From contig MCFH01000003.1 of NCBI GenBank assembly GCA_002104945.1, positions 806,001 through 870,000 of the forward strand: 64,000 nt of DNA, written 5' to 3'. Each line of letters begins with the position of its first letter. Position 1 is the stretch's first letter. Below are positions 326 through 7,000 of the stretch, piece after piece. The position numbers were made by a program, and so were the translations under genes. A model generated the notes under the pieces. It was not told the origin of the DNA. It saw only the letters and a list, made by a program, of their open reading frames with translations, and made no database searches. This DNA is from Piromyces finnis finn (taxonomy: Eukaryota > Fungi > Neocallimastigomycota).

Positions 326-3140
326 TTAATAATAGTTGTTGTTGTTATTGTTATAATTGTTATTATTATTGTTATAGTTGTTGTTGTTGTTATTATTATA
401 ATTGTTATTATTATTGTCATAGTTGTTGTTGTTATAATTGTTATAGTTGTTATTATTATTGTTATAGTTGTTGTTATTGTTATAATTGTTATAGTTGTTA
501 TTATTATTGTCATAGTTGTTGTTGTTGTTATAATTGTTGTTATTGTTGTTGTTGTTATTATCACTAATTTGAATACATTGATGATAATAATCATTATATA
601 CTTTACATACAAAGCCTTCTACACAACATGTAGGTCCTTGATAGCCTATACCACCGCATTGGTTAAATGCACTAACACAATTACTAGGTGAAGGTGTAGT
701 GGTGGTTGTGGTAGTGGTAAAAGTAATAGATGTTGAAGATGGTGTTAAAATTGTTGTGGTTGTTCTAAGAGTTTTAGTAGTTGTAATAATAGGAATGGTT
801 TTAGTGGTGAGAACTGTTGCAGATGGTGTTGGAATTGGTGTGGACGTGGTAATTATTGTAGTAGTTGTTGAAAGAGTTTTCGTTGTTGTAATGATAGGAA
901 CGGGTTTAGTAGTAGAAGTTATAGTAATAGTAGAGGTAATGGTAGTAATTGGACTGGCTGATGTAACGGTGGTAGTGGTTGTTGTTGGTAATGTAGATGT
1001 AGTGGTGGTAGTGGTGGTGGTGGTAGTAGTGGTGGTAGTAGTTTCAATGTCAGATGTAGTAATATCAATTGTTGTTGTTGGTTCTTCTTCAATGGTGGTA
1101 GATTCTTCAAGAGTGGTGGTGGTGGTAGTAGGTTCTTCCTCCAAGGTTGTTGTGGTAATGGTATCTTTAATAATACCACACCAATCACCATTTTCAACAC
1201 CCCAATCACCATCACTGTCAGTATAGGCAACTTCAGTTGTTTGGGTACAACATGGATAACCTTGGACTTCTGACCAACATTCTATTGGATTCTCTGGATC
1301 TTCAATAGGATTGATTTCCTTTTCAAAAATGTATGGACCATCCGAGACTTCCATGGAATCTACTTCATAAATCGTAATAGAAAGCATTGTAGTGGTATCC
1401 GTTGTGTTAAAATCCAATACACCAAAAGTGGAACTATACGTTTGATTATACCTATAAACATAATCTCTATTAGGATTAGAGGAGAATCCATAAAGTTTAC
1501 TACCAGTGGAACAATTAGAAGTGATATACAATGTACCATTGACATTTTTATTTACTTCTTCCTTTTTAATGGAAGATACGCCGTAATAACCTTCCATTTG
1601 ATCATTATCCGTACCCTTATAATGAATAAAATTAGAAACGGTGTAAACATGATCATGACCATTAAGTACCAAATCAAAATGATAATGATCCATTAAACGG
1701 GTAAGACATGGACGTAACTTTGAGGTAATATCGGTATCTGATGAATGTGTACTACCATTGCCATAAATATCATGATGGAACATGGCAATACGCCAATTGG
1801 CCTCTGGATACTTGGTGAGGGCTTCCTTAATGACGGTTTCAAAATCGGTACAATCAGAATAGTTGGTTTCGAGAACAACCACAACGACATTATTATATTT
1901 GAAATAATAACTATAACCAGGAATAAATCCTTCCCATCGACTACCCTTCCAACTGTCCTTATAGGATGGGTTGGTAAAGGAATTAGGGGTATTGAAATGA
2001 TTTCTATAGTTTACAGTAAGAGAATCATGATTACCAATGGCGGTTGCTGAAGGAAATTGTTTCAATAATTCTGGAAGAAGGAAAGCAGAATATTGGGTTT
2101 CTTGTTCAAGATAATTGGCTTCAGACCAATCATCTGCCATAGTTTCTGCTTGATCCCCAGCAGATAATAATAAACTTGGTTCATTTCCGGCAATCTTAAA
2201 TGAATTTACAATGGTCATGTTCCAGTTGAAGGCATCATTTCGAATAGCTTCCTCCATAACAAATTTTTTACTTTTACCGCCAGGTCGAAAAGCAAAACGA
2301 TTTTTGGAACCACCAATTTGAGGATCACCAACAAAAATAAATTTAAATTTTTTGGAATCATGGGTTTTAAATTCAATAAGATCTTCCTCCCATTGTCCAT
2401 TTAATTTTCTTTTGTAGTAATAAACGGAATTACGATCTAAATTGGTAACACTAACTTTGTTAGAATAGTATTGAATACCTTGTAATTCGTAATGCTTTTC
2501 ATTGGTACCAGTGAATTCTTCACAATTGCTTAAATCTTCACTGGTACACCAATAAATTACAGGTTTATCTTCTGTAGTAGAATACCAACCAAAATTAACT
2601 TGGGATTCATCCTCTCCAACAAACACGGAAAGACGTTCAAAATTATTTTTATATTCATTATCCCATTTCTTTTGGAAGTCATTCCATTCCTTTCTAGTTT
2701 CATCTTTCAATTCACGATCATTCCAATTGGGCTTACTTTTTCTTATACCACACCATATTGAATTTCCATTTTCATCCGTTGTTATACCCCTTTAATTTAT
2801 TAATATTATTATTGGTGTTGTTGTTGTTTTAGTATTGATGGTGTTATTATAAATGTTGTTGTTGTTGTTGTATAGTATTGATAAGTGTTGTTTTTAATGT
2901 TGATGTCGTTAATGATGAATGATGTTTAAAAAAAATTATATATATATAAAAATATTTTAAAAAATATTAAATTAATAATATAAAATTTACAATCTATTTA
3001 AAATTTAAAATAAAATTTATAATTTGATAATTTAAATGTGATAGGAATGAATATTTACCAGTTACCATCTTGATCCTTGGAGTAGATTTCTTTATTTTTG
3101 TTACAACATGGAATTGCTATAAATATATTTGTATATTTTT

Positions 3141-3171
<31 letters not shown>

Positions 3172-4032
3172 TTATTAAGTTTTACTATTTTTTTTTTTTA
3201 TTATTAATGACGACTAGAAATAAATTATTTACATAAAGCTAAGGACCAGCATTCCCCGTTAGGAATACCACATTTTATTCCATAATCATCTTCATACCTA
3301 TATTAGTATATATAAAAATATATGGATTAACATATTAAATATATGTCTTTTTTGTATAATATTGGTATTATTTTTAATTTTTATTTATTTCTTACCAGTC
3401 ACCATTTTCATCAAATACATTAGCTACTTCACCATTTTTACAACTATTATTATTAATAAATTAAATTATAAAGGTATTAATGAACTATAAATTTTTATCT
3501 TTATTAAAAGTAACAAAAAAAGTGTTGAATAATTAAATATTTAATTATATATATATACCAAGGAAGATTATATTTATTTGCCCAACAAGCTTCTTCTTCT
3601 TCTTCCTTATTTCCTTCTTCTTCTTTTTTTAGTATTCCACACCAATTTTCATTATAAATTCCCCTAAAAATTATTTAATAGATAAATTATTTATTAAAAA
3701 AAAATAAATATATTTTCTTAAAAGTAAGTGAAAAAGAAAAAAAATTAGATTTTTACCAATCTCCATCATCATCAGTGGTAATTATAGTAGTATCTTCAGG
3801 ACAACTGAAGATAAAATATATAATTGATATTATTTTTAGGATTTTCCCATTATAAAGTTTATTATTTAATATCGTTTAAACTAAATTATATGTATAAAAT
3901 ACAATTTAATATTTTTATTTAAATTTACCATGGATAACCAAGTTTTATTGACCAACAATTTGAATTGACTTCCTCAGCTTTTATTTTTGTTAAGCTTAAT
4001 AATAATGATATACCAAATAATATATATTTCAT
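326..4032 (-). CDS. Secreted purple-acid-phosphatase-like metallophosphoesterase: signal peptide, 3 N-terminal fungal dockerins, catalytic domain, 4th dockerin, Thr-rich linker, CBM1, Asn/Tyr-rich tail (7 exons, ~963 aa)
   Basis: Hand-spliced exons 4032-3929, 3804-3757, 3663-3559, 3443-3396, 3297-3233, 3116-3059, 2789-326 (all GT-AG, total 2892 nt, in frame). N-terminus [19 protein letters not shown]. Dockerins [78 protein letters not shown] and [24 protein letters not shown]. Calcineurin-like motifs GDPQ, AGDQAE, GNHD, FHH, GHDH. CBM1 [35 protein letters not shown]. Confidence 0.9.
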
Positions 4033-7000
4033 TTTTTCTTTTTTTTTCTTTTCTTTATTAAAAGTTGTATCTTTTAAATACTAAAAATAAAATAAAAAAA
4101 AAAAAACAACAAAAAACAAAATAATAATATTAATATTAATAATAATAATAATACTATTATTTTTATTTTTCTATTATATATATATAATATGAAGACTTTT
4201 TCTTAAAAAAATTTCTTTTTTAATTATTCTATTCTTTATACAATTATATTGAATTTTAATTAATTTTCTTTTTTTATCATTTAAATTGAATTTGTTTTAT
4301 ATAAAAAAATGGTTAAAAAATATTCTTTCAAAGATATATTTTTAAATTAGTTTCAAACTTTTGTTTAAATGATACTTTATTTTTTATTTGATATTTGTTG
4401 AATAAATTTTATTTTCTTATGCTTGCTAAGAAAATTGACTTTTTTTGAATACAATTCAAAATTGAATATATTGAATATTATTAACAAATATCAATGTATT
4501 GAGAAAAGAATGTTAATGTTAATTTTTTTTTTTTTTTTTTAATTATTCTTTTTCTCACTTTTTTTTTAAAAAATTATAATTTGGTATTCATTTGAAATTA
4601 TAAAAAAAAAAAAAGTTTTTTTTTTGCCTGAATTCTTTAAATATTTATATCTTTTTTTTTTTTAATTAAAAATTTTTAGGGTTAACTTTTTTTAGTTGGT
4701 GGTTTTTCTTTGGTTCAACAATAGTAAAAAATTAAATTAAAAACTGAAAATATTATTTTTTTTTTTTTTTTTTTTGAATGAAAAACGCTTTTTAGATGTT
4801 AACGATTTATGTAAAAACTTTGTATTCATTGCTTTTTTGATGATGGAATGTTAATGAAAGAAAAAAAAAGTTTATTCTAATAATGAATATAAATACAATT
4901 ATGAATGAATCTTTTTTTTTTTTTTTTTTTAATCTCTTATTTACTATTATTCTAAATTATCACACTTGAAGAGAAAAAAAAAGAAATTCTATCATTACAT
5001 TTCTTTCTAAATAAAAAAACTTATTCAATTTTCTCTCTTTCTTTTAACTTTTCTAATTCTTTTGTAGTCATTCTTTTCCTTCAACTTTCTTATAAACTTT
5101 TTCTTCTTCTTCTCTCCAAAAAAAACCAACCAACCTTTCAAATAAAAAAAAAGAAAATTTCATTTTAAAATTAAACTTTAATTATAAATTGTTACACAAA
5201 ACTTTAATTATTATAAAAATATTTTTAATTAAAATTTTAATTAATGTCAAAAAAAAAGATTTTCAAAAATGCATTTTATAATTAAATATTATTATTATTC
5301 TTTATTAATTATAATAATAATAAAAAAAAAGAATTACTCATTATTATAGCTTTTATTTTTTAAAAAAAATAAAATGATGTATTGATGATCAATAAAAAGA
5401 AAATGTGAAAAAAAGGTAAATATTGATAGTAAGCAATAATAAATTTTAATAAATAATAAAAAAAAATAATAATTCTTATTATTATTTATTATTTATTATT
5501 TATTATTGTAATTAAAAAAAGGGGAATGATTTAATTTATCATAATTTTTTAATTTTAATTCCTAGATATTTATTTAATTATATAATTATTTATTCATTTA
5601 GTTTTATAGATATTTATTTAAGTATTCATTAATATATCAATGAATCTATTGGCTATAAAAAAAGGAAGGATTAAAAAAGTCATGAAACATTTCATAAAAA
5701 AATTTGAACCAAAATTTAGGATTCAACCAATAATTAAATAGGAATTATTAAAAAATATACTGATTTATTAATAAATAAAGTTTGGTATCACAAAATGATG
5801 TCATCCATTTTATTAAAAAACAATAAAGAAAAGTTGAAAGGAGAAAATGTGACAAGTGCATAAGTGAAGGTGGTGGTGAAAGATGTGGTAGGTTGTGAAA
5901 GGTTGTAAAAGAGAGAAAGTGAAATAAAAAACCTTTTTTATGATGAAATGAAAGATAATCTTTTTTATTATTATTATAATACTTTTATAGTGAGTTTGTA
6001 AAGAATCTATTTACTACCATTTGATTTTTTTTTATTTTTTAAAAAATGAAGCGTATACAAACATAAAAAGGTCAATAGATCAATATATGTCAATATATGT
6101 TAATATATACATACACAGCATTGCTCTATTAACCCATGCTTTTTTTTTTTAAATTGTACATTTTATTAATGTATTTTAGTTTTAGGCAGATGACTTTTTT
6201 TACTAATAATTTATACATGTTTTATCGTGTTTTATGTGTTTGACATGAATAGAAAAGGCAAAATCTATAATAAAATATATATAATAATTAAAAGAAATAA
6301 ATGAATCACACAAAGAAAAAACTAATACAATAACATCCCTCTTGATAAGAATTGGACCTTTATTAATAATGTTTCATGAATTGCATATTAAAAAGAAGAA
6401 AAAAGGATAGATTTACATAAACCAATTTTCATGTTTATATAATATAGGTTTATATGGTTAGAATACTCTTTTTTTTTTTTTTTTAAATTGTAGAAATGTA
6501 ACAAATTTTTTTTTATTTTACTTTGCCTTTTTTTAAATACTTTTTTTTTTTTGAACTACTAGTTTTATATAATATATATCAAATGTAATGGATTAGGAGA
6601 TATAAAGGTGTATTATATAAACGTTTCAATTATATTTAAATGTTTAAACCCTACGAATTAACACTTTCTAACAATATGTTTTTTAAAGTTATTTTTTTGT
6701 AATACATTGTATTGTAATGTATTAATAGCTCACGTGTCTATTACTATATCAAGTCACATTCTATTGTATATATTTATTCAAATTTACATTAATTAATGTA
6801 AAATAATAAAAATACCTATTAATAATCAACATTTGTGTTGTCAATAGAGCAAACAATTCTGATGTTTAACTATCAATGTTTTTTATTTATTATCTCATTT
6901 TAGAACAATAAATAAATTCTATGTATTTTAATTTATAGCAATATTTATTTATAAACAATACAATAATATTTTTGTGTCAAAAAAATACACATCATAATCA

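Follow-up and report, generated by a model that had tools for sequence, protein, structure and literature searches.

The gene described here lies on the minus strand at positions 4032..326 of the window, by which we mean the whole 64,000-nucleotide (nt) stretch of contig MCFH01000003.1 of the anaerobic gut fungus Piromyces finnis that was analysed. Read on the reverse strand, it has seven exons with 2892 nt of coding sequence in 963 codons. We consider it likely that the gene is expressed and encodes a secreted binuclear metallophosphoesterase of Bacillota ancestry, tagged with fungal dockerins and a CBM1. The gene is real but not new, as it is one paralogue of an annotated and uncharacterised family, and a single member of such a family is ordinary by itself.

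The spliced form of the gene is transcribed. Four public runs contain 61-64% of the words sampled from 1200-4100, which is about the exonic share, and their contigs were aligned to window positions 1200-4150 (runs X1, X2, and X3 come from two studies and X4 from a third). Each of X1, X2, and X3 has a single contig of 584-682 nt that joins the exons across all six introns with no mismatches. The middle of intron 6, the largest one, has zero depth in these contigs. The earlier note on this DNA would have been refuted by dockerin exons that are not joined to the catalytic exon, and the contigs of the three runs show them joined. All six introns have GT-AG borders, lengths of 93-269 nt, and an A+T content of 85-91%. 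The run contigs end within the Thr linker, and the CBM1 and the tail at the 3' end have the open frame as their sole backing. The sole long contig of run X4 over the catalytic exon differs from the window at two positions, 1493 (A>G) and 1583 (G>A), probably reflecting strain variation.

Pfam gave no match on the single N-terminal exons, as the pieces are too short. Instead, a dockerin hidden Markov model (HMM) was built from the dockerins of the fungal homologues (232 copies) and run on each exon separately, and the N-terminal dockerin evidence is given per exon. The exons, with the matching pieces of the X1-X3 contigs, are as follows.

3929..4032, minus strand: exon 1, with the ATG at 4032, the predicted signal peptide, and the first third of dockerin 1 (CW..LGYP); spliced contigs extend to 4022 (contig piece 3929-4022); dockerin HMM positions 3-12
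3757..3804, minus strand: exon 2, the middle of dockerin 1; contig piece of 49 nt ending at 3804, joint 3804>3929 in X1-X3; dockerin HMM positions 14-28, 14.2 bits
3559..3663, minus strand: exon 3, the end of dockerin 1, a Glu/Lys-rich spacer, and the start of dockerin 2; contig piece 3559-3662; dockerin HMM positions 30-41, then 2-12
3396..3443, minus strand: exon 4, the middle of dockerin 2 (divergent); contig piece 3394-3443; dockerin HMM positions 14-28, 8.4 bits
3233..3297, minus strand: exon 5, the end of dockerin 2 (without the second Trp) and the start of dockerin 3; contig piece 3233-3295; weak dockerin HMM pieces of 3-5 bits
3059..3116, minus strand: exon 6, the middle of dockerin 3; contig piece 3058-3116; dockerin HMM positions 11-28, 20.5 bits
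326..2789, minus strand: exon 7, uninterrupted, 820 codons plus the stop at 328-326, with the end of dockerin 3, the catalytic module, dockerin 4, the linker, the CBM1, and the tail; contig piece 2639-2788; dockerin HMM positions 32-41 at its start

Exon 7 is the open reading frame (ORF) 326..2710 lengthened upstream to the acceptor at 2790/2789, in agreement with the joint 2788>3058 in X1-X3. Every exon junction splits a codon (Cys, Trp, Cys, Trp, Ser, and Trp in order), and the split Cys and Trp codons correspond to conserved Cys/Trp residues of fungal dockerins. Across these split codons, the pattern CW..PCC...DG.W...CGI is legible in dockerins 1-3, whose colinear HMM pieces total about 39, 20, and 35 bits, respectively, when the per-exon scores are summed. 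Three predicted N-terminal dockerins precede the catalytic module, and dockerin 2 is the most divergent of them. The signal peptide predicted in exon 1, judged from the sequence by eye, has about 19 amino acids (aa) with a hydrophobic core followed by KIKA. Downstream of the catalytic module, exon 7 encodes the following parts.

1166..1288, minus strand: dockerin 4, intact; Pfam CBM_10 57 bits, E-value (E) 2.8e-15, cut-off 23; family dockerin HMM 69.9 bits
668..1165, minus strand: Thr-rich linker of about 165 aa, read from the translation, with short repeats of 9-15 nt at 999-1042
575..667, minus strand: CBM1; Pfam CBM_1 (PF00734) 47 bits, E 2.3e-12, cut-off 20.6; HMM 52.4 bits
329..574, minus strand: Asn/Tyr-rich low-complexity tail predicted from the ORF, with the frame open to 326

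Dockerin 4 combines a score above the cut-off with the Cys/Trp pattern of fungal dockerins (CBM_10 / DOC2, PF02013). The CBM1 likewise has both the score and the Cys framework (QCGG...YY.QC), and its Phe/Tyr/Tyr presumably occupy the positions of the aromatic triad of Cel7A. The earlier note had read a layout of signal peptide, three dockerins, phosphoesterase, dockerin, Thr linker, and CBM1 from the letters. The spliced contigs of X1-X3, Pfam, and the dockerin HMM bear out this order, and the Pfam scores of CBM_10 and CBM_1 above their cut-offs agree with a layout that would target the enzyme to the cellulosome and to cellulose. The predicted Asn/Tyr tail follows the CBM1 at the C-terminal end of the protein and is encoded by an in-frame tandem repeat at 335-547 (TRF; period 45/48 nt, 4.3-4.6 copies, 86-88% match). 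It begins at the point where CBM1 proteins normally stop.

Introns cut dockerins 1 and 2 at identical sites, one within the codon for the first Cys of the CC pair and the other within the Trp codon that follows D-G-x. Dockerin 3 retains the second site, and its first intron sits a few codons earlier. Equally piecewise dockerin matches were seen in the tandem paralogues at 779-802 kb of the same contig. The sequence suggests that the dockerin units were duplicated along with their introns.

The catalytic module of exon 7 has three parts.

2387..2623, minus strand: N-terminal beta-sandwich of the purple acid phosphatase (PAP) type; Pur_ac_phosph_N 28.8 bits, just below the cut-off of 30; model strands 28-115
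1643..2344, minus strand: calcineurin-like metallophosphoesterase domain; motifs GDPQIG, GDQAE, GNHD, HHD, and GHDH
1301..1642, minus strand: C-terminal beta-rich part, kept in the bacterial relatives in full-length alignment; model strands 376-465

Membership in the metallophosphoesterase superfamily is supported by a Metallophos (PF00149) score of 46.2 bits against a cut-off of 21.5, over residues 123-356 of the catalytic piece. Pfam found no Metallophos_C and no PhoD domain in the protein, and no NCBIfam family matches the catalytic module. A homologue search of 5.8 billion proteins returned 229 matches, 120 of which were listed, and motifs were compared across 83 fungal and 37 bacterial homologues. 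Pur_ac_phosph_N is precomputed as present in most of these homologues, and with the family profile the beta-sandwich aligns with residues 42-112 of kidney-bean PAP. An AlphaFold2 model built on a 47-sequence alignment has a mean local confidence (pLDDT) of 91.3 and a predicted template modelling score (pTM) of 0.93. Its top folds in the PDB are the kidney-bean, sweet-potato, lupin, and wheat PAPs (E 5e-22 to 1e-18, template modelling score (TM) 0.60-0.73), with kidney-bean PAP at E 5e-22, TM 0.65-0.71, and 15% identity. The next matches are PhoD, mammalian PAPs, SMPDL3A/B, and GpdQ. The plant-type PAP architecture, an N-terminal fibronectin-like domain followed by a metallophosphoesterase domain, is present here, with a Foldseek TM of 0.65-0.73 over both domains. 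The family profile finds the PAP structure 1kbp at E 1.2e-12.

With the plant PAPs (1KBP/4DHL, 1XZW, lupin PPD1 3ZK4, and wheat phytase 6GIT), the fungal enzyme has in common the two-domain fold, and its second-sphere His residues and all but one of the seven metal ligands can be aligned with theirs. It differs from them in an identity of 14-16%, in a Glu that replaces their Tyr ligand, in motif I (GDPQ versus GDxG), and in about 25 residues inserted after motif I. GDPQIG is invariant across the 83 fungal and 37 bacterial homologues. In this D-P-Q motif I, a Gln takes the usual place of His, two residues past the first Asp, in all 120. The superfamily is marked by five blocks (D-x-H, GD, GNH[DE], H, and GHxH). 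Here the GD, GNHD, H312, and GHDH blocks are present and conserved, with GNH[D/E] and H[H/Q]D as variants across the homologues. The earlier note had also stated that motif II is GDQAE and lacks the chromophoric Tyr. This holds for the gene, and none of the 120 homologues has a Tyr at this position. After a conserved GDQx, the residue there is Glu in this gene and Asp in most paralogues, with D/E/N in the fungi and N/S in the bacteria. A true PAP has seven ligands including the Tyr of GDxxY, which forms the Fe(III)-tyrosinate chromophore, and the present protein does not have this set. The enzyme is PAP-like in fold and is not a true purple acid phosphatase, and its chemistry is probably PAP-like.

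Ten residues are invariant in the 47-row alignment (D129, P130, Q131, D186, N227, H228, H322, H352, D353, and H354). H312 is conserved at 90% or more in the same alignment, and one of the 37 bacterial homologues has an Asn instead. GNH retains its second-sphere His, and H322 lies within the stretch aligned to His295/His296 of PAP. Because it directly follows the strand 121-127 of the model, we infer that Asp129, rather than the invariant Asp159 of the next helix, is the motif I ligand. In that helix, N158, D159, and W163 (window about 2222-2239) are invariant across the 47 fungal and bacterial sequences. They stand outside the five classical metallophosphoesterase motifs, downstream of an insertion of about 25 residues with lower pLDDT. 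A motif I without His and a motif II without Tyr could point to a catalytically dead scaffold or binding protein that keeps the fold only. However, the same substitutions are fixed in the 120 homologues, including the bacterial ones, while the other ligands and the two second-sphere His vary little or not at all. Such a pattern marks an active site under purifying selection, so a dead protein is very hard to credit.

The fold matches also bear on the suggestion of the earlier note that the enzyme is possibly a phytase. A dedicated cellulosomal PAP-type phytase would free phosphate from plant phytate, and a wheat purple acid phytase is indeed among the fold matches (6gja, E 8e-20) and is the best PDB match of the single sequence, though at an E of only 0.056. 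The wheat enzyme, at 14% identity, scores no better than non-phytase PAPs, and 6gja/6git rank below the kidney-bean and sweet-potato PAPs by both fold and profile, which weakens the suggestion. The catalytic Tyr common to all PAP phytases is absent, and the nearest relatives are uncharacterised Bacillota enzymes. Moreover, phytate is not a cell-wall component, and a CBM1 gives a phytase no obvious advantage. We regard the phytase as improbable.

The label of serine/threonine protein phosphatase, given by automatic annotation, deserves even less weight. A 2015 transcriptome paper (PMC4672494) names 'serine and threonine protein phosphatases' in its list of transcripts with dockerins, and one bacterial relative (P0085) is so named. 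Yet the protein has the PAP fold and a domain order with an N-terminal beta-sandwich, and it is predicted to be secreted. The GDxHG and GDxVDRG signatures of the PPP phosphatases are absent, with GDPQIG and GDQAE as motifs I and II. A Ser/Thr protein phosphatase is highly improbable.

The gene has many relatives in anaerobic gut fungi. The first 80 or so matches all come from these fungi at 39-59% identity (Piromyces finnis, Piromyces sp. E2, Anaeromyces robustus, Neocallimastix californiae, Orpinomyces, and metagenome contigs), with names such as 'Metallo-dependent phosphatase', 'Purple acid phosphatase', and 'Non-catalytic module family DOC2'. Public records of Anaeromyces, Piromyces, and Neocallimastix already carry proteins with CBM10, Metallophos, and CBM1, and the annotated Neocallimastigomycota relatives, at 45-63% identity, show CBM_10, Metallophos, Pur_ac_phosph_N, and CBM_1 together as this gene does. 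For many of the fungal matches, CBM_10, Metallophos, and CBM_1 are precomputed. Among the 83 fungal homologues listed, dockerins stand on one or both sides of the catalytic module in many combinations, and about a quarter have dockerins together with CBM1. The 3 + 1 dockerin count of this gene is absent among the homologues listed, where 2+1+CBM1 and 4+1+CBM1 occur, and no protein listed is identical to its product.

A search of the P. finnis genome (56.46 Mb in 232 contigs) found at least 10 paralogues, and the catalytic frame is uninterrupted in all 10 copies. Five of them form a head-to-tail array at 779-810 kb of the window's contig, with the present gene as the last. The array, scanned in concatenated contiguous genomic pieces without splicing, has five copies of one layout, in which split dockerins at the N-terminal end are followed by a catalytic exon free of introns, one or more C-terminal dockerins, and a CBM1. 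The annotated P. finnis proteins P0010, P0012, and P0016 are also encoded on this contig (1,653,768 nt). The earlier note had implied that the gene is singular, which does not hold, as the layout recurs in the genome paralogues and four other anaerobic fungi have annotated proteins with it. Tandem copies were also seen in enrichment-metagenome contigs of other anaerobic fungi. One 30.8-kb contig (L001) has three family copies in 17 kb, L003/L004 carry further tandem arrays, and prokaryotic gene calling detaches the dockerin and CBM1 exons on these contigs. We considered whether 'dockerin-less' metagenome matches of about 500 aa (44-52% identity) are closer bacterial donors and rejected them, because they are catalytic exons that a prokaryotic gene finder called on fungal DNA. 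The contigs have few genes and contain tandem copies as well as scattered CBM_10 fragments.

Dockerin-tagged cargo other than glycosidases is listed as a class for anaerobic fungi (serpins, CotH, expansins, and 'phosphatases'; PMC4672494 and PMC10978972), and PMC10978972 lists the dockerin-tagged 'phosphatases' in passing. In the searchable literature, we found no paper that pairs a dockerin with a metallophosphoesterase, calcineurin-like phosphatase, or purple acid phosphatase, and no analysis of the phosphatase group. The family is not mentioned in the main texts of the horizontal gene transfer surveys checked, and PF00149 does not appear in the supplement of PMC11291939. Papers on CPPED1 and on an Akkermansia metallophosphoesterase concern other subfamilies and were set aside.

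Next after the fungi, among the matches listed, come Bacillota proteins that align over 89-98% of the query at 33-38% identity. In species genomes, a scan found relatives in Lachnospiraceae, Oscillospiraceae, Selenomonadaceae, and Veillonellaceae, as well as in Actinomycetota at 27-30% identity, and the ESM-Atlas neighbours are likewise Bacillota clusters. The only named eukaryotic homologues among the matches listed belong to Neocallimastigomycota. In a quick IQ-TREE analysis of 110 rows with an Actinomycetota root, the fungal sequences form a single clade (SH-aLRT 100) on a long stem of 1.28. This clade lies within a 96% clade of gut Bacillota (Lachnospiraceae, Selenomonadaceae, and Veillonellaceae), itself within 99% Bacillota clades. 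Fungal monophyly, nesting in bacteria, and the lack of other eukaryotes, which together are expected of horizontal transfer, were all found in the quick tree and among the matches listed. A bacterial origin of the intronless catalytic exon, raised by the earlier note, gains from the nested fungal clade and from the 33-38% identity to bacteria, in contrast to eukaryotic PAPs, which the single sequence barely detects (E 0.056). The nested tree and the uninterrupted catalytic frames of all 10 copies, together with the intron-rich 5' dockerin part, support one bacterial transfer that would have been followed by duplication and fusion to fungal targeting modules.

The PAP-like enzymes of gut Bacillota have the same GDPQIG, GNH, and GHDH motifs and likewise lack the Tyr in motif II, which ends in Asn/Ser in the bacteria and in Asp/Glu in the fungi. 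They carry signal peptides and sometimes Big_2, FN3, or FIVAR modules, and they have no dockerin or CBM1. Nearly all of the bacterial proteins P0082-P0115 show A-(A/G)-T-E-H-W-N-D-A-S after the signal peptide within their first 40 residues, and the fungal enzymes retain W-N-D where the N-terminal helix begins.

The bacterial gene usually precedes a gene for the membrane protein YibE/F (PF07907), which lies downstream on the same strand in 55 of the 80 bacterial loci, which make up nearly all of the non-actinobacterial loci. YibE/F is absent beside the Actinomycetota relatives and from the fungus. The pair occurs in Bacillota, Synergistota, Bacteroidota, and Desulfobacterota (L005-L058, L066, L069, L076, L078, and L084; for example, L011:5842-8610 and L045:5875-8855). 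Clustering of the neighbourhoods of 59 bacterial loci gave YibE/F as the sole conserved neighbour. The enzyme and YibE/F are a conserved two-gene module and a defined target for bacterial genetics.

In the scenario that we favour, a secreted enzyme of gut Bacillota would have entered the ancestor of Neocallimastigomycota once. Its catalytic module would then have multiplied to at least 10 copies in P. finnis, several of them in tandem, and the copies would have gained the intron-rich dockerin exons upstream and the dockerin(s), Thr linker, and CBM1 downstream. The signal peptide would export the protein. From its modules we infer docking to scaffoldin and attachment to cellulose; the dockerins would hold the enzyme on the former and the CBM1 on the latter, keeping the binuclear metal centre at the fibre surface. 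The enzyme would hydrolyse phosphate esters that are exposed or released during the digestion of plant fibre. The simplest benefit would be the salvage of phosphate or nucleotides from plant cells as they lyse. The analysis thus confirms what the earlier note observed and supports its interpretation in part; the phosphate scavenging and the phytase in it are conjecture.

Several points weigh against this scenario. Phosphoesterase activity, presence in the cellulosome, and binding are predictions. The Gln in motif I and the exchange of Tyr for Glu make the metal site unlike that of every characterised PAP, and therefore activity and metal content cannot be assumed. Dockerin 2 is degenerate and may not bind. 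The RNA label of the runs is a guess; we take them as RNA or cDNA because their contigs lack the introns. The tree comes from a quick search with a fungal stem of 1.28, for which the tool warns of possible long-branch effects, and the sampling of eukaryotes consists of one word-seeded search with 120 of 229 matches listed.

The copy number and the double anchoring admit a different function. The enzyme could be an accessory phosphodiesterase on the cellulosome that cuts phosphodiester-linked material coating or anchoring the substrate, with better access to the wall or a competitive advantage as the benefit. Double anchoring and at least 10 copies resemble the accessory enzymes among carbohydrate-active enzymes more than a housekeeping phosphatase. 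The fold neighbours beyond the PAPs are the diesterases PhoD, SMPDL3A/B, and GpdQ, and the bacterial ancestors would have been secreted or located at the surface, with Big_2, FN3, or FIVAR modules in some of them. Dockerin-tagged 'phosphatase' transcripts of Orpinomyces look constitutive and not substrate-induced (supplement of PMC4672494), which would also fit such a role. However, the best fold matches are monoesterases. PhoD of Bacillus subtilis (2YEQ), a secreted PAP-related phosphodiesterase of like fold, is found at E 2.5e-12 and is a weaker match with TM 0.50-0.54 and 11% identity.

Candidate substrates of such a diesterase would be the extracellular DNA and teichoic acids of competing bacteria attached to the fibre, plant glycosyl-inositol-phosphoryl-ceramides, and arabinogalactan proteins with glycosylphosphatidylinositol anchors. 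We hold this reading to be rather unlikely. Equally tentative is its extension to the whole family as a new class of cellulosomal accessory phosphodiesterases that strip the fibre surface, recruited from the Bacillota enzyme and YibE/F module. A secreted metallophosphoesterase, with salvage as its simplest putative benefit, is the reading that we prefer.

Fungal cellulosomes have been studied almost wholly as carbohydrate-active machines. The present family implies that phosphate-ester chemistry would be routinely done at the fibre surface. Its function, whether phosphorus nutrition, nucleic-acid salvage, or removal of barriers or competitors, would extend the parts list of the cellulosome. 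The family should be easy to express and assay, which makes the substrate question tractable, and an answer would also assign a role to the pair of enzyme and YibE/F that is widespread in gut Bacillota.

Some observations on the bacterial module remain. At 11 loci of the bacterial relatives, Rfam detected no upstream riboswitch. Foldseek found nothing in the PDB at E <= 0.001 for the YibE/F model. This model (pLDDT 81.5) has one transmembrane helix, an OB-like beta-barrel, and a helical bundle. In Megasphaera sueciensis, an unrelated small Metallophos/Metallophos_2 gene (L011:8642-9748, minus strand) lies just downstream of YibE/F.

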